DNA from: Neoechinorhynchus agilis
Lineage: Eukaryota > Animalia > Acanthocephala
Length of the DNA stretch: 64,000 bases
Direction of reading: 5' to 3'
NCBI GenBank assembly: GCA_051530055.1
Contig: CM121342.1
Coordinates: forward strand, 16,135,480 to 16,199,479
Shown in pieces: positions 20,290 to 60,000 of this stretch. Position numbers and translations under genes: made by a program. Numbering within the stretch: position 1 is the first letter of the stretch; the number at the start of each line of letters is the position of its first letter. The notes under the pieces are model-generated. The model had not been told where the DNA came from, searched no databases, and worked only from the letters and a program-made list of their open reading frames with translations.

Positions 20290-23100
20290 TTTTCTACAAA
20301 GGCAAGCTTCTAAGGCCCGTCGCAATAACTCCCCAGACTCTCCCCGTATACAAAAGGTACTTACTAACAAAATACCTATCAACCGCAAAAACTTCCTTTC
20401 CTTTAAAATTCGATCAGATGGCAACTCAACATGGTGGCAGGCCGTCAAGGACTCTCTTGGTCAACGCCACCCGGATCCCTTCCCTAATTTGTTCTCCACT
20501 GAATTTAAAAAGGTTAAAGATTCCGTTAATCAGAACCTCTGCCAGCTCAATATCAGTCTGCACACAATCTTTCGCACCCACAGCTGAAACTTTTGTCAAC
20601 TCACCGATACTCCCCTTAGTTTCGTCATACGAAGTACTCCAGTATCTCAAGAAATTACCTCGAAATTCGTCCTCTCAATCCAAAATCCCAAACTGGGCTC
20701 TTCGCTGCATCATCCCCGAACTCATCGACCCTCTTACCCACATTTTTTCCAGAAATTCACCAATTTATTGTTTGGAGATATAAACATAATTATTCGCCGC
20801 CCTCGTCCTCAATTTTTGCCCGAATGCTTGCAGGGTTGCCTCTCAACACGGCGATGCTGATATTTTGAACCAGGTATTGACCTGACCTTGCATCACCGGT
20901 TATAACCTGAAGGCGTCGCTTCAGATCCCTCGGGAGTTGAAGAGCCTCGCTACCAAGAGATCCGTAGGTCTCAACCCCAAAAGGCACAAACACATGGGTC
21001 CAGGCTAAATCGAGGTATTTCGCCATTTTCCGCCCTTCCGCAGCGCTCGCTGCACCTGCAGCTTTAACCACCGAGAACTTGAGATTGCTGGCCGCGAGTG
21101 TATCGACACAAGTGGCGTCCCAGAGGAGGCATTTACCCTCCCGCCAAGGAAATACGGTCACCCCATCAGGTCTACGCCCGTCGTCCTTACAGAGGTTGGC
21201 AGGTTCCAAAATATTGGTGGCATGTACCGTAACAAGTACCCGGCTCCGCACCATTTTAATTTCGGCAAGTCTTGCGAATCTGCCGGCTGATTTTCTACAG
21301 ATGAGACCATGACGTCCCGATGAATCCACATTTGCACCGCAGCGGCAACGATAGGGATGACACATCGGTAGTCCAAGTCTCATTGAAACTCCGACCCATA
21401 CTGCCTCGTCGGAGAGGAGAATACCCACAGATGCCAGCGGGACTGCGTTCAACCAAGCATTTGATTCTCTAGTGGAGACTGCCAACAACCTGGCACGGAC
21501 AACGTCGTCGCTTGAGTCTGATAAGAGAGAGCTTTGAACTCTTGCGACGAGGGGTCGATCCCACACAGATTGTTTTTGGCCATTCACAGGTACTTAATCG
21601 GAGTTGGTCAGTGTACACCACTCACTGATTCCCTCTTCAAAATTCCCACATTATAAACCTCAGCTTTTTATATGGCAGCCTGAAAACTGCTAAAGTTATC
21701 CTTGTTCCAAAAAAGGGCATCCTATTTCGGCCGAATCATTCCGTCCAATATCTATTCTACCCACTTTCAAAAATCATCGAAAAAGTGTTTTAAATCTCGC
21801 CTGATTTCACTTCTCTACGAAAAGCTATCGCCCCTACAATTTGGCTTCCGGCCCAGATTTTCTGCAACCGATGTCCTACTTTCCATTTATGACACGCTGC
21901 TACGTAACCTCGACAATAATCTCCCCCACGTCACCAGTTTCATTCAACTTGATTTATCTAAAGCTTTCGACTCAGTGTACCATTCATTCACTCCTTCTCC
22001 GGGCCTGTTCCGACTTTGGTCTCAACTTGTGGCAAATCCGCTGGCTCGAATCTTATCTTCACACCGAAGACGTAACTCAAGGTGCTGCTCTGTCACCACT
22101 TGTTTAATATTTTCTTGAACGAATTTAAACCGCTCTCGTCTCACTCTAAACTTTTCTTATACGCCGACGATCTCACCCTCATCACTCAATCACCCTCCCA
22201 CTTCTCCCTCTCCTTAACATCTAACGAAATCATCTACATAAAAGATTTCTGCACCAATCACAAATTCCACCTGAATTTCTATAAATGCTTCGAAATGATC
22301 CCTTCATTCTCCTCCAACCCCACATTCTCCCCTGAGCTTCTAAATTACATCCTGCGAGTAACCTCCCTAAGAATTCTGGGTATCCAATTTAAATCAAATT
22401 TGAAATGGCACTGGCACATCACTCTCTCCCTCAAGCACAACACCTTAAAAAATTAATCTCCTAAAACGCCTCCGATATTTAGGAATCCCTTCACCCGATC
22501 TCTACAAATTTTGCTTATGCTTTATTTTACCCTCCCGCACCTACGGTTAACCCATAATTTGCTACCTATCCAAATCTGTCGTCTTGGAATGTTTAGTAAA
22601 AGAGCATCCAAAATTTGCACAACTTACTTCCCCCTCTCACCGAACGCCTTGATGCTATTTTCATAAAACAAACCAAACGCATCTCAACTCTATCACCACA
22701 ATTTCTACACATATCGCCCTCTTTTCACCCCTCAACCTCGCACCTTCCTATACCTATGCTCGTTTACATGCTGCCCAATAGTTTCGGGTATCATAACTTG
22801 AAATGAACCTGGGGAAAGACGAACCTTACGAGCACTCCTACAAACAATAACCGCCAATTCCCACAAAAACGGGCCTTCCAAGCAAACGGATATTCTCAAA
22901 CGAGCGGACACATTCTCACCCGAACGAACCGTCCCCGACTGGATAGTTCTCCCCAGAATAGTTATCCCTCCGACCAGATATAACCTCCCGAACGGACATC
23001 CCTCGACTGCATATTCCCATATTAACGGATGAGGACCCAAAGGTACATGGGCCTCCTAACCTTTCTTTGTATTTTAAATAAACGTTTTATTATTATAAAT
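20290..23100 (+). mobile_element. CR1/L2-group LINE (RT region, frameshifted), split by a nested CRE element
   Basis: LIDPLTHIF / KTAKVILVPK / FRPISIL / LDLSKAFDSV / QGAALSP / LYADDLTLI / LRILG motifs across frameshifts; C-rich sense strand; 3' end AATAAACGTTTTATTATTATA. Boundaries approximate. Confidence 0.8.
20755..21620 (-). mobile_element. CRE-clade non-LTR retrotransposon 3' portion (zinc knuckle + restriction-like endonuclease) nested in the LINE
   Basis: ORF 20790-21587: CRCGANVDSSGRHGLIC, RRPDG, WDATCVDT, FVPFGVETYG, QNISIAVLRGNPASI. Confidence 0.88.
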
Positions 23101-23652
23101 AAATGGCGGGCCTCAGCATAACTGATAAAAATTATTTCGTATTGCTCATGGTTCTTTTGCTCAATACGATTGGTAGGAACTATTAAGACCTTGAATTATC
23201 AAGCGTTCGACGTTAAATAAAATCTCTGCTAGATCGACACATAGATGATGTTTCTAGATAAATAAGGTTCAGCGAATTTAACTTTATAATGACTGCTGAT
23301 ATCTATTTGGATGAATATAAGCGTTAAAATTCTAATTGTTTTATTATCCATTATAAACCGATAAAAATTTCAATCACGTATTGAACCATGATGAAAACTG
23401 CAGTGTTAAAAACAAACTTCAAATCGCAGTATTGAGTTCTGGAATTTTAGGCTTCCGTCACAAACAAGGGGGATCAGGTTGGTCAAAAGTTGCGAACCTT
23501 TAACTTAAGAGTATTTTAATGCGTAATCAAAAAGGAAATGATTAAATTGCCTCAACAGTCGAAGAATACTTTAGAGCTAGGCGTCAAAATCTATCTCAAA
23601 GAATATATAGCCCTTTTCCAAACCGACAAAGTAAACGAGCAAGCTATTTTAT

Positions 23653-25524
23653 TCACTTAGAGTTTACATGAGTCCTCATGCAATATCCTTTAAGCTTCAA
23701 AACCGGACATTCGCTATCGGAAAACAAACAAATTCTCTTTCTTACATTGCACTTATCTGAAATAGAAACAAGATTCGCCTTGAGATCAAAGTAGCCACTT
23801 TGCTTAATAATACTTTTAATTCCACCAGAAGACTTCGTCATGATAAGTAAATCTTTTTTATCCATATGCTTGTAGATATCAGCCAGTGATAATGTTTCGT
23901 TGTCAATCACCAAACGTACTACTTTCCTTAGCAAACCTTCGGTATCTTCGAGTTTTACATGATTCTGAGAGCTTCGTTTTTTGTCGGTGAACATTTGATC
24001 GCTCATAGATCCACCGTACTTTAGGTATATGCTCCGAATATCGTCTCCGGATCTTGCGTGGTCATTAACTAATCCTATAATACACTTAGCTCGTGTTGAA
24101 GGAATACGAAGTTTATCTATCAAAACGCGAAATCCTAGGTCATCACTCATTTTCTTCAAAATTGCTAAATAACGCTCATATACAGACGAAACGTTTTTTG
24201 TCTCTTCTAAACTTGAAAAATCACATGACTTGAATTTTCCGTGAAATCCGTATGGACAGCAAGGGATTATTTAGAAGATTTTTTAGAAAAATTCTCAAAA
24301 ATCTTTTAATTAAGATAAAATTGCTTTTATTGCTAGCGGCAATCAGCGGCACCCATGGAGTTAACTCGTCGCCATGATTGTTTATTAAGAAATCGAATTC
24401 TTTAAATTGATTCCAAGAGTCCCAATTGTGCAGGCATAACTGAATCTCTCTTAAATCACAATCTGATCCAAATAAATCCCATATTCTTCGTTTTCGCATA
24501 TCTATGCCGGTTCCAATGAAACCGCATTCCTTAAGTAGATACACCAAAAGTCCGTTTCCACAACCAATGTCCAAAAACCGTAGGGGTAGCGAATGCTGAG
24601 ACCATAAACTAATCAGGTAAGCTGCGATGTTCAAGTCTTCGTGAATAAACTTTGATGAGTCTGTAGATTCAGTCCAGTTTTTCTTTAGGTGAGTAGAATG
24701 GAGTTCTTTAATAAGGAAATCTGATCATTAAATGTTGGGAAATTAAATATGATAGGTTCACGTGAACAAAAATCTAAAGTGCTTTGATATAATTCCAGAC
24801 AAGTCTCGTAAATTATTTTATTGAGCATGAAGTTCAACATTTCAACAACAAGAATGGTTTTTAAATTCAGACGTAAGACTAAAATTTAGAAATGTAAGGG
24901 TTTTGTAAAAAAATTAAGCATCTAAAAGTTGTTGAGTTTTGGGTATAACTCGATGCTGATGAAGATTTGTTTTTGTACTTACAAAAGGATCCGAAAACAC
25001 TGCCTAAAAGCAGACCAGATTATTCGCCTTCGGTTGTACGTATCGTAGTAGAATTGTATATCAATATGCTTGAGGGTGCTTATGTCCGTTGAGCAATTCT
25101 CAATCGAAGACCAATTGCAGATCTTTCGAAACAACACATTCTGTATCCAACCATTGGGTTCCTCTTCAAAAAGGCAGGCAATTCTTCTACTTTCATCAAA
25201 TTTAAACCGATAGGCGGTTTTAATCGAAATCGATTCTTGACTGCAATTTGTTTCAGTTTCGCATTTTTGCGGAACGAAAGTGTATTGATTACAGTCAATG
25301 TACACTAACTCACTTGAACTCATTACACCCCATTTGTTAGAACGGTATAGAAGTTTTCTTTGGACTTGGTATGTGTCCGTTTCGTTTAAAAGTTCACCAA
25401 TAACACAAGCGAATAATCTTCGGTTTATAACCTGAGGCTTTTTGATGTAGATCATGCATGCAGCTCGAAAATCGGACTGACTGCAGTGCACTGGAATTGT
25501 TGTTGTGCATTTCCAATCAATCAT
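23653..25524 (-). CDS. TRMT44: tRNA (uracil-O2'-)-methyltransferase TRMT44; three segments separated by two non-GT-AG inserts
   Basis: KPQVINRRL, KFIHED, FLDIGCGNGLLVYLL, GIDMRKRRIW, NHGDELTPW, PCC, C-terminal C/H cluster. Segments 25524-25030, 24718(or 24712)-24310 and 24266-23653 join into an open frame of about 503-505 aa. Confidence 0.85.
24267..24309 (-). other. 43-nt hairpin insert in TRMT44 CDS (candidate non-canonical intron)
   Basis: 18-bp inverted repeat (16/18) with a 3-nt loop and TTAA/ATAA flanking repeat. Removal restores FILIPCC. No GT or GC donor. Confidence 0.75.
24719..25029 (-). other. About 311-317 nt insert in TRMT44 CDS with imperfect terminal inverted repeat (candidate non-canonical intron)
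   Basis: Ends AAGG..AATCTGGTC / GATCAGATTTCCTT. In-frame removal gives YNR(FL)IKELHSTHLKKNW. The strong GTAAGT donor inside is out of phase with the CAG acceptor. Confidence 0.6.
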
Positions 25525-25789
25525 AAGATATCTGCATAAAATAGAATAAAGGAAGAAAATAATTCCGAAGTTTTAATCTGATTTGCCTTTAAAGGCGTGA
25601 TATTGATCATTATCCAAAACTGACAGCAAATTTTCTCTTAATAATCGCTAAAATCATTCAATGTGAGGCTGAAAGGACTCTGTAATATTTAGGGTATGAA
25701 TAGGAAACCGTAAATGATTGGCTATAGTAAACGTCTACTCTATATCTTAAGCATTCGACTCGGTAGGCCATTCATTACTCCTTCAAGCC

Positions 25790-26825
25790 TTTTCGATTTC
25801 GGTCAAAACGCATGACAGATCATCTGTCTACCCCTTCTCGATTACCCTATCCTTTACAAAAGGTGTACCTCAAGGTGCGATCCCTTCACCACTTGTTTTT
25901 AATATTTTCTTAAACGACCTCAAACCTCTCTCCTCTCTAAACTCTTCTAATACGCCGACGATATCACCCTCATGACCCATTCACCAACCACCTCTCCCTC
26001 TCCTTAACCTCTAAAGAAATCACACACAAAAGATTTCTGCACCAATCACAAACTCTACCTAAACTTCTTTAAATGCTTCGAAATGATTCCCTCATTTTCC
26101 CGCAACACCACATCATACCCTGAGCTTCTAAATGACATTCTACGAGTCACATCCCTAAGAATTCTGGGTATCCAATTTCAACCAAACTTGAAATGGCACT
26201 GGTACATCACTCTCTTCCTCAAGCACAGCACTTTTGAAATTTATCTACTCAAACGCCTCTGACATTTAGGAATACCTTTACCCGATCTCTACAAATTTTG
26301 CTTATGCTTTATTTTATCCCCCGCATCTACGGTTATCCCATCCTTTGCTACCTATCCAAATCCGTCGTCTTGAAATTCTTCATAAAAGAGCATCTAAAAT
26401 TTGTACAATTGACTTCCCACTCTCTCCGAATACCTTGATGCTATTTTCATAAAACAAACCAAACGCATCTCAACTCTATCACCACAATTTCTACCGCATA
26501 TCGCCTCTTTTCACACGAGCACAACACTCGTAATTCCAATTCGTTTCATCATCTCTCGATCTCGCACCTCCCTATACCTACGCTCCTTTCTCCATGCTGC
26601 CCAATCTTGTCGGATATCATGATTAGAAGTGAACATGAGGAAATACCCAACCTCACAAACTCTCCTACAAACCAAATCCACTAATTCCCATCCGATTGAA
26701 TCCGTAATCCACTCCAAAATCAATAACCACATTCATTTTACTAATCAAAACCAGAATGTTTATAAGGACCCAAAGGTATATGCGTCTCATTCTTTTTGGA
26801 TTAGGAAATGAACGTGTTATTATTA
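25790..26825 (+). mobile_element. 5'-truncated CR1/L2-group LINE copy
   Basis: Highly similar to 22000-23100 (shared stretches CCTAAGAATTCTGGGTATCCAATTT and TTGAAATGGCACTGG); ends with AACGTGTTATTATT. Confidence 0.85.
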
Positions 26826-27708
26826 ATTCATCTACTTCTCAAATTTAAATATAGGTCAAAATACTTCTATTTGTTAATCATAAATTCAACGCTTGCTAGG
26901 CTGTAAGGAGACTCCTTATTTAATAAGTTTAGTCTTTAGCAAATTTCGGATCGATATTCCATGAATTCACATAGAACATTCTGATACTACATAGAATTCA
27001 CTTATATTAAAAAGTCTAGAATTGAGCTAAGCTCATGATAGCAGAAGGTAGCGACAAAAATCCATTTGAATACATGGAGGAAATATTTGTCTTTGTGTCA
27101 ATTGAACTCCAGGGGTTTTAGTATTTCACTCGCGGTAGAATATCAATTTCTGGTGCCGTCCAGCTTCGATTTAATCGATATTCTGCAATCAATTTCAGCA
27201 TCATTTTGAGTGAAACAACGAGGAACAGATCGAAATGCGGTTAGGAAGATCTTTGAACGCGAGTTCATTCGTGTAGTTCATTGCGGAAGAGTAGAAACGG
27301 GTGACTCTATGAGGTAAAAGAACCCGTTCGATCTGGATGTACGATTAGAATTCTTTTCCTATTGGAGTCTTCACTACTAAGGGACGCACCTAACTGCTTT
27401 GATCGATCGTAGATGGCGCAGCATCTCCAACTGAGTTGTTACAATACGACACCCAAAAGTCTGACCAAAATCCCAGTTATTCGAAGCTTCGACGAATGCA
27501 CGTCTCCTCGTGATACAGATCTTCTCCCATTGACATCTTTGCGATACTGTGCTTGTGGGCGTATCAAGCAATTCCTCAAGAAGACTGACGTCTCTGAAAG
27601 TATTTACCCAATTCTGATAAGTATTCGGTTAGGACGAGTGGTCACCGCATCTCTGTTGTCCTGCGACTGCATTCCTCCTTCCAACAGCAAGGATTCCCAT
27701 CATAAGAA

Positions 27709-30700
27709 ATGGCATACCTGATGTATCTATCAACGGGGTTTATACTCGCGATTTGTTCAATCAGTTAGGCACCCTTGAAACAAATCATGAAGATCTCGCT
27801 TCTTTGTAGGCCCTAGCAGCGATCTGTGCAACCAATTCCACGAAAACTGCGAATCGTGCATTTCAGGAGGCGGCCCGTTATGTGCTTGGTGCACTACTCC
27901 AGTGGTGAGGGAACTTCTGCGACTTTTAGTCGAATTTCCGTTTAGATTGAAGCGAATGCTAGTTTTAGTCGATGCGGCAGACATGACTTGATGAAAACTC
28001 ACTGCAAAAGCGATCGACTGGTCTACTCGAGAAGCAGTGTCGAACCAACTAAGGTTCGGCGATCGTTATTAAAATAAAAAACATAAAGTTCGCACTCGCT
28101 TCAAATAGATTGAACATTCACTAATGTCAGCAGCGATTGAAAGCGATCCAACCAACGTCGTTATTAAAATTAGACCAAGTAAGTTGTTAGTCGACTGTCT
28201 TAAGCCTGATCAAATAATTTTCGGGTTTTTCGAAACTCATTTGCATTATGAAATTGAATAAACGTTTTCCGATGCACAATGCCGTAAAAAACCTACCTCT
28301 TTGAGAATTTTAATTATAGTAATTCTCCACTGTCGCGGAGTGAATACGAAAATTATTAGTTTAATTTTTCCCATTAGCTCATCATCTCTTCTGTGAAAAA
28401 TTCGAAGGTCGAAATTCAACGCAAATTTACTTTTAGGCTGACCAACGAAGTTCGCCAGGGTACTTATCATCAGTCGTTTCTCAAGCATATTTTTGGAATT
28501 AAATACAGGGTATCCCAAAAAATGTATACACACTTTAAATAATTGTAAATTTAAGGTTTATTATAATTTGAATAATTTTCAACGTGTAAAAAATTATAAA
28601 AATACCATTCTATTGTCTTGTTATCGCATTTTCTCAAACTGTCAGGTCCCCAATAGATGCAATTGTGCTTGTTAATCGAAACATTTTTTCGGATATCCTG
28701 TATATAGTCCATTCGGTGTTATAATATTTTTAACAATAATATTACAATAGTATTTAAAATGCGCACTGTATCGCTTTGATAGCCCTTATCCACATCCACG
28801 GAGATAGCAAATGTAAACTTTTTCTATTGTTGAATATTATTGATCGAAGGGAACAATCGTATCCATTCTCATATTGTTTTCGAAAAAATCGTATTTAAAA
28901 TCGTTTTGCGAAGCTGTGTTTATTTTTCAACAGGGAAATTCGAGTTTCTGTTTAGCGCCCAGAATTTATTATTCATATAATTTAGGAGAATCCTAACCTG
29001 TTTTTTAAAACTATGTTAACATTTTTGTAAAATTATAATATTGTTGAAAATACTCCCGGTGCGAAAAAGCTACATAACATTATTATTTCTCACTACTTTA
29101 ACAATGACTGATGAGGCGAGGTTACCTCGCGAAATATCTCCAATAAATCAAATATGCTATTACCGGGAGTATTTTCACCAATATCGATGATTTTGTAAAA
29201 CATTGAAATTAAAAATCTCGTTCTTAAGCGGCTTGCGGTTTCCCGTTGAGCCCACAAAGTACAACGACAATGCGGATGTCAAGGAATAATCCCTAGATGA
29301 AATCCGTTCTCATACTAATTTATCCACCTGCCGCTCTTCACTTTAAAGAAACTTAAAACCTTTTAGACGACCCTGTGAAATTTAATGTGAGCTTCAAACA
29401 GGTTTCGGATTACCCGGTCGACCTTTATTTTTTAATGGATTTATCCAATTCTATGGTGGATGATAAGCATAGGCTGAGTCAGCTGGTTAAGCAACTAGGT
29501 ATGCCGCAAATCCATTTTCACTCACAAATATATTGTGAAAGCCACCAAAATGCGGAATATTACGTCGGACTTCAGATTGGGATTCGGAAGCTACGTGGAG
29601 AAACCTATAATGCCATTTGTAAGTATAGGTACCACTAATAGGTAATTTAAGATAAAAGTATTATGATTTGCTACATTTATGCCTGTCATAGATCTCATAA
29701 GTCGTGTGCGCTCCAAAATCAGAATGGAAACATTACAACTACATGTATACCAGCGTATAGTTTCAAACACCATCTTAGCCTGACAAATGACTCTGAGGAA
29801 TTCGCAGTGAGTTTTATGATTTAGTTTTGTTAATGTGATAGTGTCATATAGTCTAAAATTGTAGAATTGACTCACGTTTCACTAATTTTTTGTCAAAAAG
29901 TAGTAGTAGAATGTGCATATAACTCCATTGAAAGCCCTTTTCCTTCGGTATTTCGTCATGTATTATCTAGTCTCAAGTGGAAAAAACAAAGGTTTCCCGG
30001 AATATTGATGAACCTGAAGGCGGTCTAGATGCGCTAATGCAGGTCATTGTTTGCGAGGTGAGTTTATAGTGACATTAAAGATACATTATTTCATAATGGA
30101 AAGAAAATAATTGGCTGGCGACCGAACTCCAGAAGATTAATAGTCTTTTCAACAGACGCCGGTCTGCACTTTGCAGGAGACGGAAAGGCGCGTATTTAAC
30201 TTATTTCAGACTGGATAATATTCTTTTTTTTAACAGTTGGCTGGGATAATTGAACCAAACGATGAGAAATGCCACTTATCCCGAGTTTACGACCAATCAT
30301 TTGGTAGATTTGTCTACGAATATACCGAGTCAACGCGGCAGGTCAATTGGATCTTAGTACACTTTTTTATACACTGAAAAATTCTAGGATTATCCATCAT
30401 TTGGGCAAATCTATGCAAAATTGATGGAGTACAATGTCAATATTATTTTTGCGGTCACTTCGCGTCAAGTCCCTCTGTACACGGAAATCGCGAATTTTCT
30501 TGAAGCGGCTGTAGTCGGCGAATTGGACGATGACTCAAGCAACATTGTGGACTTGGTGGCAATGAATTATAAGGTATGTTGACGGGTATGTATGCTTTGA
30601 TCATAAAAGCATTAAGAAAATCACTAATCGAATGAGATTGATGTTCAAGGCATCTGGGGATGCGAAGGTTGTCAAAGAAGGCAAAGTGTTTTTAGTTGGA

Positions 30701-43390: not shown

Positions 43391-45073
43391 TTAATCGTCA
43401 AAAGAAATTAAAGGTTCGTCTCGGATGGTTTTAATGTTCTCCGTGGAATGCTCTTGCTTTTGTGGTGGTTGCGATAAACTGTTCTCGATTTTCACTGATG
43501 GTTGTAAAGCATTTAGAGGCTGCTCCGGCATTTCCTGATGATGGTAGACAGGATATCCGGTTTGGGGCTGGTATGTTTGCTGCTGCATTCGCCCATGCAG
43601 TTCCTGTTCTTGAAGTGCGAATTGTCTCAATTGGACCTCCTTTTGTAATCTCAAGCATTCTTGTTTCTTCATTCGCATTACCTCCAGTTTTTGATTCAAA
43701 GCAATTAACCGCTGATTCTCACGCTCTCGTGCTTCAAGTCGAATTCGCTCCTGGTGTTCATTGCGAAGGGCGTCGATTGCTTCACTCGCATCTTTTACGG
43801 ATGCGAGTTTGTCTTGAAGGCTCTCGTAGTAAGTTCGACAATCTTCTAAGTATTTCATAATCGATAATAGCTTTGGTGTCAATTGAGACAATATCACAAA
43901 CAATGATTGAACCGATGTGTCGTTAATCAGAAGACGGCCACGTCTTCTGTTACTCTCGAGACGGATATTAAACTTTTCAACATAATCAAGAACTTTGTTA
44001 ACTGTTTCCATTATCATCTCGTCTCGGGATGAAGGAGGCGGATTCGGCTTTGGTTCTTCAATAGATGGCATCGTAGAGATCGGAGGAGCTGATGGTAGAC
44101 ACGAAGAGACCGTCGATGGTGCCGATGTAACAGATACATCATCTATGGCCTTTTCGATCTCCTGAAACCTATCGTCAAGGGAAGGATAAGCCGATGGCTT
44201 TGACAGTGATGATGATGACGGTGCAGTTGATACCAAAATTTGTGATGATGATGGGCGACGTTTTAATCGTTCATCTTCCTCACTTTTAGATAATGCCAAA
44301 GCCAACTGAAGCTGCTCTTCTTCGTTCAACTCAGCGTGTGATACATTGTCTCTTTTAAGGCTCAAACTATCGTCGTTTTGCTTCTTAAAGAACTCTGGAT
44401 TTGTAATCTCCACGTGACAAGCATCACACACTCGCACTTCTTCATTGAATCCAAATTTTGGAAGCGGAAGTTTCTGAGATGAACATTTCTGACAGAAAAT
44501 ATCACCACAATTTCGGCAATGGTGTTTCCGATTGGTAAATGTGAACGCATCTCGACAAAGAAAACAAGAATCGCCATCTTTCCATTCCGGTGGAAGATCG
44601 GTTTCGTAAAATGCTGATACGTGTTGATTAACGTCGCCACTTGAAAATTTATAACCGTATATTTTAAGAGCTTCAAAGAGAGCAAGAATCGGTTTGCCAT
44701 CCTTGCTTTCACCGAAAGCAACAGTCCAATTATGAATTAGTTCGAGAGGTTTTTGGCGTGCCTCACTGGGCAATGAGAGAATGTAGTCACGAAGAAAGCA
44801 GACGAATTCCGGAGCGCAAATCTCTTTTTGCATTAAAGGAGCGCAATTTTTCACAAGAGACTCAAGACATTCTAATGCGAGATCCGAAGTGATGCGATTG
44901 TTTGAGCTCAGTGTTCGTTTGATCATTTGGAGGGCAGATTTAGGTGATACTTTTCCGTCTTTGACCATGTCACATAACTCAATGGCCGACGACCAGTCGA
45001 TTTCCGTTGAACTTGAACTCGTGCATTTTTCCAGAATCTTCTCGAATTTTTTGGTTTCAGATTGAAGAAACAT
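43391..45073 (-). CDS. HGS: Hepatocyte growth factor-regulated tyrosine kinase substrate (Hrs/Vps27), intronless
   Basis: VHS domain, FYVE (RKHHCRNCG...RVCDAC), UIM EEEQLQLALALS, PSAP, coiled coil, clathrin box LISFD; 560 aa ORF. Confidence 0.93.
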   Translation of the reverse strand: MFLQSETKKFEKILEKCTSSSSTEIDWSSAIELCDMVKDGKVSPKSALQMIKRTLSSNNRITSDLALECLESLVKNCAPLMQKEICAPEFVCFLRDYILSLPSEARQKPLELIHNWTVAFGESKDGKPILALFEALKIYGYKFSSGDVNQHVSAFYETDLPPEWKDGDSCFLCRDAFTFTNRKHHCRNCGDIFCQKCSSQKLPLPKFGFNEEVRVCDACHVEITNPEFFKKQNDDSLSLKRDNVSHAELNEEEQLQLALALSKSEEDERLKRRPSSSQILVSTAPSSSSLSKPSAYPSLDDRFQEIEKAIDDVSVTSAPSTVSSCLPSAPPISTMPSIEEPKPNPPPSSRDEMIMETVNKVLDYVEKFNIRLESNRRRGRLLINDTSVQSLFVILSQLTPKLLSIMKYLEDCRTYYESLQDKLASVKDASEAIDALRNEHQERIRLEARERENQRLIALNQKLEVMRMKKQECLRLQKEVQLRQFALQEQELHGRMQQQTYQPQTGYPVYHHQEMPEQPLNALQPSVKIENSLSQPPQKQEHSTENIKTIRDEPLISFDD

Positions 45074-47464: not shown

Positions 47465-48049
47465 ATGTCGCCTGGAATTTTCCGGAGAAACACACCAAAG
47501 GTCTTGGTGGTTATTGCTGATGGGTCGGAGGAGATAGAGTCCGTGGTAACAATCGACGTTCTCAGACGCGCCGAACTTGACGTGACTGTTGCTGGATTGA
47601 CTGATGAGCTCAGAGAAATCAAGTGCAGCCGAGGAGTTATTCTTAAACCGGATGCAACTCTTATTGATGTCCAGAAACGTGCATTCGATGCAATCGTGAT
47701 GCCTGGAGGCCTCGGAGGTGTTGAAATATTCTTGAAAAATGCACTTCTTAAGAGTCTTCTCAAATCTGCAGTCGAGGACGGGACGATTATTGCCGCAATC
47801 TGTGCAGCGCCACTTGCTTTGCATAAATTTGGCATAATGGCAGGAAAGACCATAACTTCGCATCCTAGTATTCGAAAAGACCTGGACTCTTCTTTTAATT
47901 ATAAGGATGATTCTGACGTCGTTTGTGATGGAAATCTGATTACGAGCAGAGGCCCAGGAACCAGCTTTCAATTTGCCTTAGCCATCGTCGAGAAGCTTTT
48001 ATCTAAAGACAAGGCGGACGAACTTAAAGCTCCAATGTGCCTAAAGTAA
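47465..48049 (+). CDS. PARK7: DJ-1/PARK7 deglycase, intronless
   Basis: GSEEIE, DVLRRA, FDAIVMPGG, AAICAAP (catalytic Cys), TSRGPGT. Confidence 0.93.
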   Translation: MSPGIFRRNTPKVLVVIADGSEEIESVVTIDVLRRAELDVTVAGLTDELREIKCSRGVILKPDATLIDVQKRAFDAIVMPGGLGGVEIFLKNALLKSLLKSAVEDGTIIAAICAAPLALHKFGIMAGKTITSHPSIRKDLDSSFNYKDDSDVVCDGNLITSRGPGTSFQFALAIVEKLLSKDKADELKAPMCLK

Positions 48050-49762: not shown

Positions 49763-50922
49763 TTACTTCTGTTCGTGTTCTGCATTCTTTTTTGCGTTAA
49801 TAATGTCGAAATCAGGGATTATCCTCAATTCGCTTTCATCTTTTGGAACGATCCAACTCTCGTATCCCGCATCCAAAGCGTCAGGAAAATCGGATTCTAA
49901 AAGCGGAATGAAATCTTTTGTTTCCACTGTTGGAATCTCAATCTTTGAGCGTGCTCGTCTGACCAAGCGCTTGTCTTCTCCTTTGTATTTGTGGACAAAT
50001 TCACATTCGCTTCCTTTTTCACAGCGACCAAAATCAGAAAACGCCTGACAGTTCTGATATGGCCTAATCAAACTCTTATGGTGACCATACATGCAGTTAG
50101 GATTGGTGCATTTGCAAGAAGATATTGAATAAACACAAGTGGGAATTCGCTCCAAGTCCAATGAATGCTCCAGTGTACATCCGGAACATTCCCTGTTGTT
50201 CAAAAATCTCGGACACAGCCGAACACTCGATTTGTCGTGCTGGTACTTGCATCTACTGAACGAACAAACATCCACAAAAAATGACAGTACACGACTTTTT
50301 CAATCTTACGTTAAGAGAATCAAGAAAATAAATTAAATCTTTCCAATGTAACGAAAAAAAAATTCGTCTGAAAAAGTTTATCGGTTTTCCGTTCAACAAA
50401 GAGCAGATTATGTGGCAAAGAATAAAAAGATTCAATCCTAATTATTCTGTTGAATTTTATTTGGAAAATTCAAGATACTGCATTTTAATTGAATGCACCA
50501 ACGAAAATTCAGCTTACGTAATTGGCCGCAGTAAGCCAATCAGGATTCAGGAATTTCAATTACACAAAAAAGATCATTTGGTGTACTGATGTTTTTGTCG
50601 ATGTATAATTCGTTCTTCGACAACCGTTTACGCAGCATCCACGTCTAATGAACATTTGGCAATTAATTGTTTTCCGTCTGATTTTATAGCGCTGGTGAAT
50701 ACCCGATGAAGGCGCGCCGCAGTCGTACAGGCTGCTCGCCGAGCGCTTCAAGCTCTCCCGCTGCTTGTTATTGTTCAATGAAGCGATCGCAGACTTGGAA
50801 GTGCGGTCAATTTTGTACCGAGATATTTGCCCATCTCTACTATACGTGTTCAAGCAAAATCGATGTTCGGATCGATCACGAAAGTGAGTTTGGTGAAAGG
50901 ATGGCTGAAATCGATATGTCAT
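49763..50922 (-). CDS. ZC3H3-like tandem CCCH zinc-finger protein (264 aa), split by a non-canonical insert
   Basis: After removing 50253-50617 the first finger reads C-QMFIRRGC-C-VNGCR-C-KYQ-H followed by DKSSVRLCPRFL, as in ZC3H3-type arrays. Confidence 0.72.
50253..50617 (-). other. 365-nt TIR-bearing insert inside a CCCH finger (candidate AA..AG intron)
   Basis: About 35-bp TIR GAACGAATTATACATCGACAAAAACATCAGTACAC vs GAACGAACAAACATCCACAAAAATGACAGTACAC; degenerate flanking repeat TGTCGAA/AGTAGAT. Confidence 0.75.
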
Positions 50923-51359: not shown

Positions 51360-52370
51360 ATTTGAGGGAATGGATTTTAATCAGGTGAATGGTGTAGCGA
51401 TGGGCAGCCCTCTAGCACCGGTGCTTGCGGAGTTCTACATGCGGCAGTGGGAAGAGAAATACCTACTCACAATTCCTGGAGTCTCATTGTGGGTCCGATA
51501 TGTGGACGACACATTTATTCTCCTTGATCGTTCTGCCTATGCCTCCATGCACCTGCAGAACTACCTCAACACTAACGATCCACACATTCAATGGTCGACG
51601 GATGTCGAGACTGACGGTAGATTCAGTTTCCTTGATGTTGCGATAGAGCGTGTTGGTGGAGATGGGTATGTGACTAAGGTGTATCGAAGATTCGATGTTC
51701 CACATGGCATGGTTCATGGATCTCCTATCAACCACGATAATATAAGATCTCCAGGGTTAGATCATTGGTACAACGATCGTTTGCTAATTGCAGCTCGAGT
51801 ACTGACCTCGAACATGAACTGGATTTTATCTTGGATTTATCAGGACAAAAGGGTTATCAGTTGAATCTGGTTAGGAAGGTGATCAGGAGCGCTAGATTTG
51901 AAAGGCCGACAGTCGTGACATTTCGGATAAGGACCGTGTGTTTCTGGAGTTGCGCTTTATTGACGATTCATCCTATCAGAGTTTATCCAGGATCCTATTG
52001 GCAGGCCGCCGGAGCAAATGTACGCTCAACTATTCAAAACGATGGAATTACCTGATCTGTCTGAGCATTCGTGAAAGCCCAAGTGGTGCGGAAACAGGAC
52101 ACGAACTCCGCTGTGGTTTCCCACTCTCTGAATACGGGCCACATGATAAATATGAACGACGCATTTGTGTTGGTACGCAATGACCATAAGGTTGAGCGTG
52201 TTATTTTCGAGGCCATGTTCATTCAGGGAGCCAGTACTTTCGAGGGTAACAAGACAGATTATTTGCTAAAGTTGGGGATACCTCCGGATAAGACAATGAG
52301 GTTGCCAAATTAATTTTTAGATAATTGACTGAAGAAGTCCAGCATGACTGGACGAAATATTTCAATTAAA
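51360..52370 (+). mobile_element. 5'-truncated Penelope-like retroelement (RT + GIY-YIG-associated C-terminus), frameshifted
   Basis: GVAMGSPLAP, WVRYVDDTF, FSFLDV, VYRR; C-terminal SAVVSH...TGH...FEAMFI; hammerhead core in the 3' UTR. Confidence 0.88.
52322..52368 (+). ncRNA. Putative minimal type I hammerhead ribozyme at the Penelope 3' end
   Basis: Stem I TAATTGA/TCAATTA (7 bp), CTGAAGA, extra A, stem II GTCCAG/CTGGAC, GAAA, palindromic A-TA-T helix III, cleavage triplet AUU. Confidence 0.7.
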
Positions 52371-53121: not shown

Positions 53122-53465
53122 TTTATTTGTTCTTTGGTGATTGAGAAAATAGAGATGAACGGACGAAATATTGATAATTAATATAGAATTAATCATATCG
53201 AGAAAATCCATCGGGACGGTAAATTTTTACTTGTGGTGAAGATAATCCGGGTTAAAAGTCATTTTATTGTTCTGAAATATTTCGAAAGAGGAAACCTCGC
53301 CTTATCAATAATTGCTTGTAAGTTTTAAAATGTGTAAAAAATTTACAAGCAATGATTGATAATGCGAGGTTTTAGAGCAATAAAATGATTTTTAACCGGG
53401 ATTATCTTCACCAAAATTCATAATACAGAATTTGTCTCTATTTTCTCAATCACCAAAGAAATAAA
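53122..53465. repeat. Foldback element (about 340 bp) with variant hammerhead cores
   Basis: Outer arms TTCTTTGGTGATTGAGAAAATAGAGA / TCTCTATTTTCTCAATCACCAAAGAA; the minus strand carries TTGATAA-G-GCGAGG...GAAATATTT. Confidence 0.8.
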
Positions 53466-53500
53466 TCATCGCCGGAGGAAATCCTTCGGGTTAATCAAAG

Positions 53501-53789
53501 TATACTTTTGGTGAAAATAATCCCGGTCATAACATGTTTGATTTATTTGAAATATTTCGCGGGGTAACCTCGTCTCCTCTGTCATCTAAAAATAGGTTTT
53601 ACACATTATGGTGGTTCGAGCGGATAATTGGTCGCCGTACTTCGGGTTCGGCGATCCCGCGCACTCGAGCATAAAACTTAATGTGTAAAACTTATTTTTA
53701 GATGACTGAGGAGGCGAAATTACCTCCTCGTGAAATATTTCCAATAAATCAAATATGTTATGACCGGGATTATTTTCAACAAAAGTATA
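53501..53789. repeat. Second adjacent foldback element with decayed hammerhead cores in both arms
   Basis: TATACTTTTGGTGAAAATAATCCCGGTCATAACAT pairs with ATGTTATGACCGGGATTATTTTCAACAAAAGTATA; CTGAGGA...GAAATATTTC at 53706. Confidence 0.82.
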
Positions 53790-53825
53790 AATAAATGAAC
53801 AACTTTTCTACAATATTATTGCTTT

Positions 53826-54075: not shown

Positions 54076-54407
54076 TGTGTATGTTTTATATGGCGGTGCG
54101 ATATATTTCGGAACTAAAATACATGGCTGATTGTATTAATGGCTTTTTTTCTAATTAAAGCAATTTAAATTTTATTCTGATTTCTTTTGGAATGATCGCT
54201 TGATGTATTATTGATTCCTTTTTGTTACGCGTCTCTTGCTGTAATCAGCTTTTTCAAAAAGGCACGAGTGTTTCCCTGTTTTTTTCCGAAGAATGACTTC
54301 GGCACCAGAAAAAACGTCTATGAAATGGAGAAAGCGAAAAATCGATAATGGTATTGCGCTTGTGCTGACTTCATTACTATGAAGTCGAGTTTGGATCCAC
54401 TAAAGAA

Positions 54408-56443
54408 ATGGAAAAGCGTTTGTGTATTACAGACGAAATCAGCAGGGTGCGATCTGTGCTTATTCATGCACCTGATGATGGGTACTTGAGAATATTCCCT
54501 GCTCATAGTCAAGATTGGATGCTTAAGGATATTGTGGATGTTACTGATCTAAGAAAAGACGAATATGAACACTTTATAAAAGTCCTCTTGGCTTTTGTGG
54601 ATTTGCCAACGCTGATGGCGATGGAGAAACAGCCAAAAGATCAGATTTCAGTAACTAATCCAAACGATCCTAAATATTTCAGGTCAGATCGAATCCTTGA
54701 TTTTCAATGGCTCCTCTCGGACGTACTTGAGGATCATAGAGTTCGAATGTGTCTCTTAAGTGCGGTTTGCGCCTTAGAGCGACCGAGATCGATTGTACAA
54801 CTTTTCTAGCTCATGGATTTGAATCAAAATTGATCTTCAAAAACCCAAGCCTAAGGATAGATTAATTGAAGTGGTGATAATCGTTTTTGTTTTTTGACAC
54901 GTTAGTAGAAATCGATCACAGTCGCCTAGAAGAAACAGTATCTAATGAGGTTAACGAAGAATTGCTAAAATTCCCGAGTCGAATACTGTCTAATATTCTA
55001 ATCACTGGATCTATGCCGAATAGTCCTCGTCTTCTTTTTCACCCAATCCCAAACTTAATGATGGCCCGCGATTCATTAGTCGTCGTCAAAGATCATTTAA
55101 TTCTCGCAAACTCCTTCAATCCTGTGAGACGTAGGGAGAACACTCTTGTCCGCTATATCGTCTACAATCACCCGATATTCGCTTGGAATAAGGAAAAAGT
55201 GATTGATTTGTTCACTGTTGGACATGCGCTGATGATCGGCGCTAAAAAGCGAAGATCGTGTGACATTACGGTCGAAGGTTCCGATTTGATGCTACTCACT
55301 CCAGATCACCTATTGATTGGTGTTGGTATTAGAACGAGTCTTGCTGGCGCTGTTGCTTTGAAGGAAATCTTACGGTTGCACTTATTTCCACTGAATTTCT
55401 TATACACAACAAGGATTAATCATCAAGACTAAATCCATCAAGATAATAATATTGGAGATTGTTGGATAGAAATATGTTTTATCCGTGAGGGTTGGAGGAT
55501 TATGATCACCACACTTCTCCAGCTAATAAGGAAGATCATCATCAAAAGAGGAAATCCTTCGAAATGAAGGAGTTAGAGATGTGTGGTGATCATAATCCTT
55601 TTCCAGACCAATCTTTTTTACTGAGATATTCCGCGGGGAAGCCTCGCCTTAGTGGTCACTGTTTCACGAGTTTGTTGTGAGCGAAGAATCGATACTTTCA
55701 ATGCGGACATGTTCAAAACGGTCGCTAATAACTTCACATTCCTTTTTATTTGTGACCATTCGAGATATCTTTGCTTGGGTTCTAGGTCAAAATGTCGATT
55801 GTGGACATAATTGCAACCGATAATGGATAAGAAACGACTTGTATCCAAGGTAACCTTTTTGTATTTGCCAAGTGAAAAGTTCTGCACTCATTTGGACACA
55901 ATATTGGTCCAAATCAAACGTGACATGTGGGTTGTCCAAACAGAAGCATTCTATGAAGCATCGGTTATCGACTGTACAAAAGTTATCGATGATTGCCAGT
56001 GGCGTGATTGGAATAGAATAAGGCGGATTATACAGTACCAATTGGACATGCCTCTGAAGGCATTCAATAGTCTTAGAGAGTTCGTTGAAGACATAACAGT
56101 CAATGATTTTAAAATTGATCGACCACCGACTGTAGTTTTATGTGACCAGGGAGAGATAGAGGATTTGTGGAGGGAACAATGGTCGGACTCTAGTAACATT
56201 CTGACTTTAAAGGAAGGTGTAATTGTCATTTACGAATCACATACTAGCCTGATCAATCTGATGGTGAAGCACGGAATGAAGGTTATGAAATCCAGCGATT
56301 TTGTAGGAGACGTCGTAAATCACAGTTTGGATCCGGATCGATTAGAAAACACGGTTATAACTATTCCGTCCAGAGAATTAGTTAATGTCAGAGGAGGAAC
56401 GCACTGTCTAGTTCTTCCTTTGTGTCGGGATTCTTTAAGGTGA
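54408..56443 (+). CDS. arcA: Bacterial-type (Bacteroidota-like) arginine deiminase, 477 aa after removal of two TIR inserts; functional status unresolved
   Basis: DEISRVRSVLIHAPD, QDWML.DIV, PIPNLMMARD, VEGSD, IRT, THLDT, REQWSDSSN, RGGTHCLVLPL; catalytic D, E, H, D and C retained. Segments 54408-54778, 54931-55372 and 55823-56443 total 1434 nt with no internal stop. Confidence 0.85.
54779..54930 (+). other. 147-bp TIR element + 5-nt repeat in ADI CDS (candidate AG..AG intron in register 54778-54929)
   Basis: TIR GCGACCGAGATCGATT / AATCGATCACAGTCGC (14/16); flanks TTAGA/CTAGA. Removal gives CALEETVSNEV. Confidence 0.75.
55373..55822 (+). other. 447-bp TIR element + 3-nt repeat in ADI CDS (candidate AC..AT intron in register 55372-55821)
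   Basis: TIR CGGTTGCACTTATTTCCAC / GTGGACATAATTGCAACCG (17/19); flanks TTA/ATA. Removal gives LKEILMDKKRLVSKVT. Confidence 0.8.
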
Positions 56444-57086: not shown

Positions 57087-60000
57087 TGTGATATTGGTTA
57101 ATTGATACTGTTGGCGCCGTCGTCCTCGCGTCATCACCGCGCTTTTGCTACCATATAGCACGCGCCCCTGGTGGTGTTTTGTGCAATAAAGCCCCTGTTT
57201 TGGTTACACATCAATTTATTGCACAAAAGAACAATTTCTTGCAATGGACGATTCAACAAGTTCGACCAGTTCGAATAGAACGTTAAAAAGGAATTTCAGG
57301 CTGGAGAGGTTCAATACGGGGCCGCACGAGCAATATTCCGAACAAAAGTTCAAACTATGGAAGAGAAACTTCAAATATACGATTCAATCGGTCGATCTTG
57401 ATAATTATAAACTAAAATACTTATTCGCCAATATTGGGCCCGATGTATACGAAGTTTTGGAAGATACCAAGACTTTTGAAAATGCTTGGACCTTATTGGA
57501 AAAGATATACAAAAAAGCACAATGAAGTGCTGAGCAGGCTCTTTTCTCTACCCGCAAACAATCAGAGAAAGAGAGCATCGATCAATACGTCCAATTTCTA
57601 ACTAGCATGGCTCGCAATTGTCGATTCAAAGCTGTCAATGCGGGGGGGGCAAATTGGAATTCATCCGAGATGCTTTCATCTCCACCATCAGATCCGATGC
57701 AATAAGATAGCGATTGCTCGAACAAGAGGATTTGGTATTGACAAAAGCCGTCGAAATAGCTAAATGTGTCCAATGTGCGACGGGCAGCATGGATCAATTT
57801 AATACCACGTCGAGTAACATGCTAAGAAGTTTGACAATAGCTGAGCGCGATTCCGTTGATATTTCCGACATAGATAGTGATTCCGCTAAATGCAATGCTG
57901 CTCGTGTAAAAGATCGATCTGACAAGCACGACAACCTTCATCTGAAATCGCTTTGCTTTTTTTTGTGGAAAAAACGACACCCAAGATTCCTTTGCCCTGC
58001 GAATCAAGCAAAATGCTACGAATGTTCAAAAAAGGGTCATTTCGTCAAAATGTGCCAATCAAAGTAAAATACTCAGGTCAGAACTTCATCTATATTCCTT
58101 GCTATTACTACAACTAATGGATTGAATAAGGGTTCCTTGATGGAGATACGAATTGGTGATTCAAAGTTTTCTGCCCTGATGGACACCTTGAGTTCACTTA
58201 ATTTCATCAACGATAAAATCGCTAAAGATATGAAATGCATTGTGAAACCGGTCTACGTGTATGTGTCAATGGCCTCTGGACATCTCCACAGGAGATCTCG
58301 TTGCAGGGTAATCACCGAGTTAAGATATGGTGGATAGACATACCAAAACGTTGAGTTGTTCATCCTGCCCGAATTATGCTATGACGTAATTTGGGGATTA
58401 CCGTTCACCAAACTACATAAGGAATTGCGGCTTAGAACATCTGGCCACGAGGATATTCTTGAACTCGCAGCCACGACCATTACCGAAGCAAATGGCGAAC
58501 CAGAGGTCGTTCCATTTCTTTTCGGGAATTTAAGCAGAGACTGCAAGCCCGTCATCACGAAATCACGAACGTTCAGTCAAAATGATACTGCCTTCATTAA
58601 ATCAGAGATCGGGCGTATGCTGAACCAAAGGATCATAGAGCCGATATCCAATGTGGAACTTCTTGTTCCTCTTCTCTGCCCATATTTAAAGGGGTCCCCC
58701 AAGGTGCCGCACTTTCCCCTCTCCTCTTTGACATTTTCTAAATGACCTCCATCGCTTCACTCCCCCTACCAAATATTTTCTCTATGCAGATGATCCCACA
58801 GTCATTACGATCGCATCTCCCTCTCTCGCCCTCTCCACAACCATGGACGAGCTCAACCATCTCATTTCCTCGCTCTGCCTAACAATTTATTCAAATCTTT
58901 TGAGCTTGTCCCCCACATTTCCAAACGCAAACTTATCCCCGCGCCTCTCCCTCTCCCCATCCAACGCTCCTCTTCTCTCCGAATACTGGGCCTGATTTTA
59001 CAAGAAAACCATAAATGACATGCCCACATTTCATTTACACTCTCTAAAGCAAACCCTTGTCTTTAACTTCTCAAACACCTCCGGCGTCTCGGCGTATCCC
59101 CTAAACACCTTCCCCACTTTCATCGCCCTTTCCGTCAATGCTCTCCATTCCATCGAAACCCTCGACAAGAGAGCAGCGAGAATATGCGGGACTTCACTCC
59201 TACCCTCGACGCCCACCTCCACTCCATTTTCTCCAAAAACGCCCTCCGTGTTTTTCAACCCCCTCCACAATTTTCTTCCCTCATCTCCAAATACTCTTCC
59301 TTCGTAAACACCCGTAACCCCAACCTTTTTCATCCTCCACTCGCTCGTACCACCCTCCACCAAAAATCTTTCCTCCCCCAAGCCCAATCTTTCCTTAATA
59401 ATCGGAAAACACGGAAAGACTCCCAATCGGCCATCTCCTGTACAAAGCCTCCGATCGCACATTAAAATTCTTTCAAAGACAAGTCCCACCTCCCTTGCCT
59501 TCAACATCCGTCATCCAGACACCTTCAGCAAAGATAGATGCTGGCAAGTGTGTGGATCGTGCTTTTCTTACATTAATTAAACGTGTTTATATATATTATA
59601 TAAACTCTCCGTGACGAGCCCAAGTTCTCATTATTAAAAAGGAAAAAGATAAAAAATTGGCTAGTGGTAGATTTTTCACGAACAATAAACTGCTTTTCAT
59701 ATTTGGACGTTTTTCCCCTTCCTAGGATAGACAAAATGGTTAATGCAATCGCTGAGAATGTAGTGTTCAGTAAAAATAGATTTAAAAGATGCATATTATC
59801 AAGTGTCAATCGACCCTAGTGAGAGAAACTATACTTCATTCGAAGCTTGCGGTAAGCTGTATCGATTCAAAAAGATCCCCATGGGTGTTACGAATGGAGT
59901 CGCAGCATTTCAGCGATTTATGAATCACATCGTTGAGAAGTATAAGTTAGCCAACACTTACTCGTATTTGGACGATGTAATAATATGCGGGAAAACAAAA

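Follow-up and report, generated by a model that had tools for sequence, protein, structure and literature searches.

Arginine deiminase (ADI) hydrolyses the guanidino group of L-arginine to give citrulline and ammonia, by way of a Cys-thiouronium intermediate and with an active site composed of Cys, His, Asp and Glu residues. The gene described here is an ADI gene of the acanthocephalan Neoechinorhynchus agilis, located in a 64-kb stretch of CM121342.1 (assembly GCA_051530055.1) that starts at approximately position 16,135,480; this whole stretch is referred to as the window, and positions are given in its numbering. ADI is found in scattered eukaryotic lineages and has been reported as absent from Metazoa (Novak et al., PMC5052871). 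Horizontal gene transfer (HGT) candidates were put at 4.8% for the acanthocephalan P. laevis, with no ADI gene named (Mauer et al., PMC7310846). Nor is ADI named among acanthocephalan HGT candidates in the literature searched, and the terms 'deiminase', 'PF02274' and 'arcA' do not occur in the supplementary material to the papers on N. agilis and P. laevis. Yet ADI is resident in acanthocephalan genomes, probably by way of one old transfer from Bacteroidota and without the CtlX gene that accompanies it there. The sequences concerned are two intact P. laevis paralogues, an expressed-looking mRNA in a third dataset and the N. agilis copy, which is interrupted by two inserts.

The N. agilis gene occupies 54408-56443 on the forward strand (chromosome position approximately 16,189,887-16,191,922), about 184 kb from the end of chromosome CM121342.1. 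Three stop-free open reading frames (ORFs) of the forward strand are found there (54408-54809, 54887-55432 and 55811-56443). The ADI coding sequence consists of three open segments, between which lie two inserts with inverted repeats (MITE, miniature inverted-repeat transposable element):

54408..54778, + strand: ADI coding segment 1, from the ATG to the last codon before insert 1; N-terminal HAPDDG...QDW...DIV region
54779..54930, + strand: insert 1, a 147-nt element (54779-54925) and a possible 5-nt target duplication (54926-54930)
54931..55372, + strand: ADI coding segment 2, with PNLMMARD, RRRE, EGSD and GIRT; Pfam ADI match of 62.2 bits; absent from the deposited gene set
55373..55822, + strand: insert 2, a MITE-like element of 448 nt (55373-55820) with TA...TA flanks
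55823..56443, + strand: ADI coding segment 3 and stop codon, with KVTFLYLP, C-T-HLDT, WREQW, YESH and RGGTHC; Pfam ADI match of 60.7 bits
54379-54809, + strand: deposited model KAL7673679.1 (P0392; hypothetical protein ACOME3_008531, 132 aa), which covers segment 1

When joined, the segments translate to 476-477 aa and are colinear from end to end with relatives of about 480 aa; the joined translations served for homology and structure comparison only. In tblastn, residues 58-175 of P. laevis ADI matched window positions 54411-54779; ORF 54408-54809 aligns to the N-terminus of full-length homologues, and comparison with homologues places the true ADI N-terminus in the frame that starts at ATG 54408. 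An in-frame stop lies upstream of this ATG, and the acceptor-like TAAAG (54401-54405) and two further A residues immediately precede it. In the deposited annotation the gene appears as two hypothetical proteins, of 132 aa and 206 aa, and segment 2 is omitted; the second protein is segment 3, listed in the gene table as a separate protein (P0283, NCBI source). Model KAL7673679.1 begins at ATG 54379 in the wrong frame, enters the ADI frame through a 32-nt GT-AG 'intron' (54482-54513) and continues into insert 1 as far as a stop at 54807.

By sequence and phylogeny, the locus encodes a member of the Bacteroidota long-form (~480 aa) ADI family. ORFs 54887-55432 and 55811-56443 match Pfam ADI PF02274 with the scores listed above (cutoff 22.8). 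The catalytic motifs are complete (ARD with R167/D168, RRRE, EGSD, IRT, HLD and RGGTHC), and the retained residues C458, H289, D291, E235, D238, D168, R187/R189 and R254 align to those of the P. aeruginosa and S. pyogenes enzymes: the Cys is the nucleophile, His and Asp form a pair, Glu and Asp bind the guanidinium and the Arg residues bind the carboxylate. An AlphaFold model of the conceptually joined sequence gave a pLDDT (predicted local distance difference test) of 81 and a pTM (predicted template modelling score) of 0.86. The best 26 PDB matches of this model are all ADIs (E 1e-22 to 1e-26), the first being 4BOF, 4E4J and 1RXX (E 1e-24 to 1e-26, TM 0.68/0.80), and amidinotransferases and DDAH match it at ~1e-8 only. 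The initial annotation of the stretch had described an ADI of 477 aa with all catalytic residues, which agrees with these results, and had named a grouping with eukaryotic amidinotransferases as the outcome that would speak against transfer; the protein does not group there. The 489-bit cutoff of the arcA equivalog model TIGR01078 is missed by the window protein (147 bits), by P. laevis (225) and by the bacterial long forms (216-239), and by the NCBI standard the window protein and the long-form family are not ArcA equivalogs. Since the family falls below this cutoff, arginine-to-citrulline activity is a prediction, drawn from the catalytic residues, the fold and the ADI-CtlX operon of the putative donors.

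A first search returned 29 relatives, headed by P. laevis GJ496_006476 (36%), a Logan contig of SRR6291331 (36%) and Bacteroidota proteins. GJ496_003789 (P0268) and P0270 (UniParc UPI00079FAEF2) came to light when 1.84 billion cluster representatives were searched exhaustively with HMMER; among the other close matches of this search the named one belongs to Chitinophagaceae and the remainder fall outside the animal clade in the tree. Three of the animal relatives are as follows:

WNNJ02001654.1, L001:10189-11733: P. laevis gene 1, GJ496_006476 (P0001), one uninterrupted ORF, intact and intronless
WNNJ02003730.1, L089:10001-11419: P. laevis gene 2, GJ496_003789 (P0268), single exon, 472 aa, intact
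SRR6291331_38286 (P0002, L002), 1680 nt: mRNA-like contig whose ADI is 67-69% identical to P. laevis gene 1; GC content at third codon positions (GC3) 0.58

The deposited model of GJ496_006476 treats 48 nt that code for 16 conserved residues (GMTVLCSADLLNDIKS) as an in-frame 'intron' and gains an N-terminal extension from a separate upstream exon. Both deposited annotations therefore need correction: the N. agilis gene is split and has a wrong-frame N-terminus, and the P. laevis model contains a spurious in-frame intron. Contig SRR6291331_38286 has a 5' untranslated region and an AATAAA near its 3' end; its called GTG start is probably wrong, as a start at an in-frame ATG approximately 96 nt upstream lengthens the protein by 32 residues, among them the conserved SEIGRLR motif.

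At least 598 bacterial loci were matched in a collection of one genome per prokaryotic species. The best 80 of these are nearly all named Bacteroidota (Chitinophagaceae, Cytophagales and Sphingobacteriales) and are 31-35% identical over query residues 1-476, which bears out the Bacteroidota family that the initial annotation had proposed. When a profile of the animal sequences was used for searching, the next-best named matches were Flammeovirgaceae, Limibacter, Algivirga and Flammeovirga, with 45-47% identity to the P. laevis-type sequences. The closest bacterial relatives are thus marine Cytophagales, Flammeovirgaceae among them. Of the 69 Bacteroidota loci whose flank is long enough, 58 have CtlX (NF046062, 404-440 bits against a cutoff of 334) as the next ORF downstream, within 500 nt. 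This donor pair would constitute a conserved two-gene route from arginine to citrulline and on to ornithine, and the CtlX context supports the view that the long-form ADI serves to form citrulline. The two-gene route was not found described in the literature searched. No tblastn match to CtlX was obtained in the window or the P. laevis loci.

Neighbour-joining trees (own NumPy implementation, 477 columns, 500 bootstraps) separate the long forms from the short canonical ADIs with 96% bootstrap. The window protein and two P. laevis-type sequences form a group of three members with 95% bootstrap, and a five-member animal clade (the window, both P. laevis genes, SRR6291331_38286 and UPI00079FAEF2) receives 90%; inside it, 50% of replicates pair the window protein with P. 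laevis gene 1. P. laevis gene 2 is 43% identical to gene 1 and groups with UPI00079FAEF2. Rare shared states were examined because the window branch is long: the window shares 14-18 rare residues with each of its four animal relatives, the median for the other sequences being 2. Seven columns are synapomorphic, with a residue that the animal sequences share and that no or almost no bacterial sequence carries; examples are F to M in PN.MMxRD (a position at which 100% of the bacterial sequences have F), the Cys before HLDT and D.WREQW. The window protein is 34-40% identical to its relatives in the animal clade, and synonymous sites are saturated at this level of protein identity. When the two P. 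laevis loci were compared with the window by tblastx, the ADI alone matched; as there is no synteny, shared ancestry rests on the protein tree and the synapomorphies. On these grounds we conclude that a single transfer probably took place before the split of Eoacanthocephala (N. agilis) and Palaeacanthocephala (P. laevis), with duplication afterwards, as the grouping of the GJ496_003789 paralogue with UPI00079FAEF2 suggests. Because the clade is common to N. agilis and P. laevis, the transfer is old.

The surroundings of the N. agilis gene are those of an animal chromosome. No N runs occur in the 64-kb window, and ordinary animal genes are present in it (an SNF transporter, a POU homeobox gene, BicD, Hrs and DJ-1), with no gaps between ADI and Hrs, DJ-1 and BicD; contamination or a scaffolding join is very unlikely for this reason. 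CM121342.1 carries the window's DJ-1 and Hrs ORFs verbatim. Codon usage is host-like, with a relative synonymous codon usage correlation of r = 0.69 against host genes (above that of Hrs against other host genes) and a GC3 of 0.41. None of arcB (OTC), arcC (carbamate kinase) and CtlX was found in the 64-kb window. The nearer flanks contain the following features:

49763-50275, - strand: CCCH zinc-finger ORF, upstream flank
51370..51864, + strand: reverse-transcriptase fragment, upstream flank (PF00078, E = 5e-5, under the gathering score)
57244..58067, + strand: gag-like ORFs with a CCHC zinc knuckle, a degenerate retroelement, downstream flank (PF00098, E = 1e-3)

These results uphold much of what the initial annotation had proposed: horizontal transfer of a bacterial-type ADI into an animal chromosome, eukaryotic retroelements on both sides, the TAAAG located 2 nt before the ATG, no arcB or arcC neighbours, and inserts with host-type terminal inverted repeats (TIRs), in that inverted repeats stand at the homology breaks and insert 2 has a core that recurs elsewhere in the window. 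The chimeric join that it had named as a possible refutation finds no counterpart in the sequence, which is without gaps. Its view of an old transfer fits the relatives in P. laevis, the host-like GC3 and codon usage and the host repeat inside the gene.

Several further observations concern the window as a whole. Hrs (43391-45073, - strand, 560 aa), DJ-1 (47465-48049, + strand, 194 aa) and the POU-homeobox gene (7917-8909, - strand, 330 aa) are each one uninterrupted ORF, and Hrs is approximately 37% identical to its best animal matches; together, these features fit a compact, intron-poor and fast-evolving genome. A strongly negative GC skew (-0.19 to -0.28), unlike that of the rest of the window, occurs at 20001-28000 and 58001-60000. 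Rfam and tRNA scans of the window gave no matches.

Insert 1 coincides with a break in homology, which stops at 54779 and resumes at 54932. Its ends are 16-nt inverted repeats at these breakpoints, GCGACCGAGATCGATT / AATCGATCACAGTCGC at 54779-54794/54910-54925, complementary at 14 of 16 positions, and a candidate target duplication (TTAGA at 54774-78 and CTAGA at 54926-30) is equal at four of five positions. By our estimate an inverted repeat of 14/16 is not rare in itself, about 0.3 being expected in 1.25 kb, and it is solely the position of the repeats that suggests a transposon. Insert 1 was also considered as a repeated host element; this was rejected, as blastn and nhmmer found no other copy in the window and its RNA fold is unexceptional (z = -0.7).

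Insert 2 has 19-nt TIRs (55373-55391/55801-55819) that are complementary at 17 of 19 positions and lie at the homology boundaries. This TIR pattern is found at these two sites only in the window, with 0.04 expected by chance, and the TA/TA arrangement around the insert requires one unpaired terminal base. Reading through from segment 2, an in-frame stop is met at 55430. The RNA fold is stronger than that of shuffled sequences (z = -4.8), with the ends paired. The core of the insert has diverged copies in the window at 53450-53632, 53198-53307 and 29096-29179; nhmmer E values are 3e-7 and 0.005 for the two upstream foldbacks and 0.002 for 29096-29179. Insert 2 thus carries a host repeat, as its core is related to these copies. 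The repeats in question are:

55496..55599: inner hairpin of insert 2, 29-nt arms, 90% complementary; located in the portion that insert 2 has in common with the host repeat family
53130..53800: two foldback MITE-like elements directly upstream of the gene, with a 26-nt perfect pair (53130-53155/53435-53460); related to the insert 2 core

The foldback cluster at 53130-53800, together with 29074-29199, has arms of 26 nt (100%), 35 (91%), 46 (89%), 55 (85%) and 75 (87%), and its core motif, GAGGAAATCCTTCG...TGGTGAAAATAATCC...CGCGGGGAAACCTCGCC, is common to insert 2. From their sequence, the foldback elements seem to form a repeat family that is abundant in N. agilis. Canonical splicing of insert 2 was rejected: no in-frame GT/GC-AG pair around it gives a family-consistent product, and the best pairs remove 9-14 conserved residues. 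Ciliate-like somatic excision of this TA-bounded element was considered and set aside as unsupported. P. laevis genes 1 and 2 and all bacterial homologues are contiguous at both insert positions.

The N. agilis coding sequence differs from its relatives in other ways as well. Across 54 other long-form ADIs 57 columns are invariant; the N. agilis sequence keeps 45 of these (79%), and each of the other members in the comparison keeps 94-100%. Among the 12 replaced invariants are G to S in EGGD, R-N..T to S-H..L in YDRN..T, R to N in SRARGG and R to K before HLDT, and most of the replaced positions are conserved in the short canonical ADIs too. The terminal branch of the window protein measures 0.81-0.83 substitutions per site, about four times the ~0.2 of its closest relatives. 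The BRAKER annotation, made with RNA-seq hints, leaves the three segments unjoined (PMC12690905). We judge it fairly likely that this copy is recently disabled or decaying, being a young pseudogene or null allele of a gene already under relaxed constraint. The 'domesticated' gene with a present role that the initial annotation had put forward is therefore not upheld, since the coding sequence is interrupted twice, insert 2 is not canonically spliceable, the annotation is unjoined and 12 of 57 invariants are lost.

Other origins of the gene have to be set against the single transfer. Bacterial contamination, or a chimeric join of sequence from outside the worm genome, could be suspected in an assembly that is a Hi-C scaffolded hybrid of pooled individuals (PMC12690905) and for an enzyme otherwise unknown in animals (PMC5052871). 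It was rejected as extremely improbable: the gene has host genes and host retroelements on both sides in 64 kb of gap-free sequence, contains a host repeat, uses host-like codons, lacks bacterial neighbours and its CtlX partner, is at most 31-35% identical to bacterial sequences, and is joined by relatives in a second, independent acanthocephalan genome and in an mRNA-like contig that carries a poly(A) signal. The scattered occurrence of ADI among eukaryotes (PMC5052871) would suit a vertically inherited gene lost in most animals, but this was also rejected, as very improbable, because the clade joins the Bacteroidota long forms apart from the short canonical ADIs, is restricted among the 1.84 billion representatives to acanthocephalan sequences and UPI00079FAEF2 (other close matches being bacterial long forms), and has intronless members in P. 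laevis. If N. agilis and P. laevis had instead acquired the gene independently from related Bacteroidota, the animal clade would be a long-branch artefact; the very long window branch, an identity to P. laevis (39-40%) that is modestly above that to bacteria (31-35%), the lack of synteny between the loci and the use of distance-based neighbour-joining for all trees are all points on that side and weigh against a single origin. The bootstrap of 90-95% for the animal clade, the lead of the four animal sequences in rare shared states and the seven animal-specific columns, including one in which F is universal among the bacterial sequences compared, speak for common ancestry nonetheless, and we regard independent acquisition as improbable.

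As to the present state of the N. agilis copy, several observations count against decay. The 1431 coding nucleotides contain no stop or frameshift despite the very long branch and 184 stop-neighbour sites; under neutrality the probability of remaining stop-free is 0.29 at 2% divergence, falling to 0.047 at 5%, and lower still with indels, so that any inactivation would have to be very recent. None of the catalytic residues has been lost. The arms of insert 2 show only ~90% complementarity, which hints that the element is not brand new; if they were perfect at insertion, insert 2 is older than neutral survival of the ORF would allow, and this favours continued selection and removal of the insert from the mRNA. 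Two independent insertions in a short time are unlikely as well, though the neighbourhood is dense in elements of the same kind. For insert 1 there is an alternative in an in-frame GT-AG pair (GT 54795 ... AG 54949; 155 nt, phase 0) that gives the exact family length. Both of its sites are weak, and since we estimate the probability of such a pair by chance at roughly 0.4, it does not decide between intron and element. The absence of canonical introns noted in the initial annotation accordingly holds for insert 2, with no usable pair, and is less clear for insert 1. The gene could then be functional, with both inserts acting as introner-like introns removed in a cryptic or non-canonical manner, perhaps aided by the strong pairing of the insert 2 ends, to yield an enzyme of ~476 aa with altered properties. 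One of the annotated introns of BicD has weak signals too, but the one clear BicD intron is canonical with a polypyrimidine tract, insert 2 offers no such route, the RNA-seq-supported annotation left the segments apart and 12 invariant residues are lost; we consider a functional gene possible but doubtful. It is unlikely that the inserts are transposon-derived introns in a working, fast-evolving ADI of a gut parasite, which would be the first active in a metazoan and might tap or deplete host arginine.

The history that we propose, with a recently disabled N. agilis copy as its outcome, would run as follows. A long-form ADI gene would have passed once, in ancient times, from a Bacteroidota donor (closest to marine Cytophagales) to the acanthocephalan lineage, before Eoacanthocephala and Palaeacanthocephala separated; at the animal loci examined ADI stands alone, without its donor partner CtlX. 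In N. agilis the gene, lying in a transposon-rich region, would have taken on a host-like composition, evolved under relaxed constraint and been invaded by two TIR-bounded elements, so that the copy in the assembly most likely yields no full-length enzyme and may be a very young pseudogene or null allele. The gene offers a concrete, datable example behind the bulk HGT percentages given for acanthocephalans (PMC7310846), and hints at a way of using arginine that may be specific to the parasite. ADI is a source of energy for gut protists, Giardia for example, and has been implicated in virulence (PMC12810918), which makes the ADI of an intestinal worm worth testing. The N. agilis copy would further illustrate a later fate of an acquired gene, through invasion by host MITEs and loss of invariant residues, and its locus lends itself to a clean test of the conversion of transposon insertions into introns in such a gene.

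In comparison with known systems, the N. agilis protein most resembles the long-form ADIs of Bacteroidota (Flammeovirga, Limibacter, Algivirga, Chitinophagaceae, Mucilaginibacter and Spirosoma). Both have the same length of ~480 aa, are colinear, possess extra segments relative to canonical ArcA, adopt the ADI fold and share the motifs QDW...DIV, PN..F/M.RD, EGGD, RT, HLDT, REQW.D and RGG.HC. The N. agilis sequence differs in being only 31-35% identical, in its 12 replaced invariants, in having no adjacent CtlX and in its eukaryotic context with two inserts. P. laevis GJ496_006476 and GJ496_003789 and contig SRR6291331_38286 belong to the same clade, have the same synapomorphies and are single genes without bacterial neighbours; they are uninterrupted ORFs with 94-100% of the invariants and short branches, whereas the N. 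agilis copy, 34-40% identical to them, is interrupted and has a branch about four times as long. Canonical ArcA enzymes (P. aeruginosa 1RXX, S. pyogenes 4BOF and Mycoplasma 1LXY/4E4J) agree with the N. agilis protein in fold (TM 0.68 for the query, 0.80 for the target) and in their catalytic Cys, His, Asp, Glu and Arg residues. In contrast to them, the N. agilis protein is ~20-27% identical, approximately 70 residues longer, scores 147 bits against the equivalog cutoff of 489, and lacks an arcB/arcC/arcD context. HGT genes of Syndermata (bdelloid rotifers; P. laevis, PMC7310846) are alike in being bacterial metabolic genes in transposon-rich regions near a chromosome end, with intronless relatives and host composition; the ADI stands apart in being common to two acanthocephalan classes and in having an apparently eroding N. 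agilis copy. Introners and MITE-derived introns are likewise short, structured, TIR-bounded inserts in the coding sequence of a formerly intronless gene. Unlike these, insert 2 has no usable canonical splice sites, only one of the two inserts has detectable relatives in the window, and splicing is putative.

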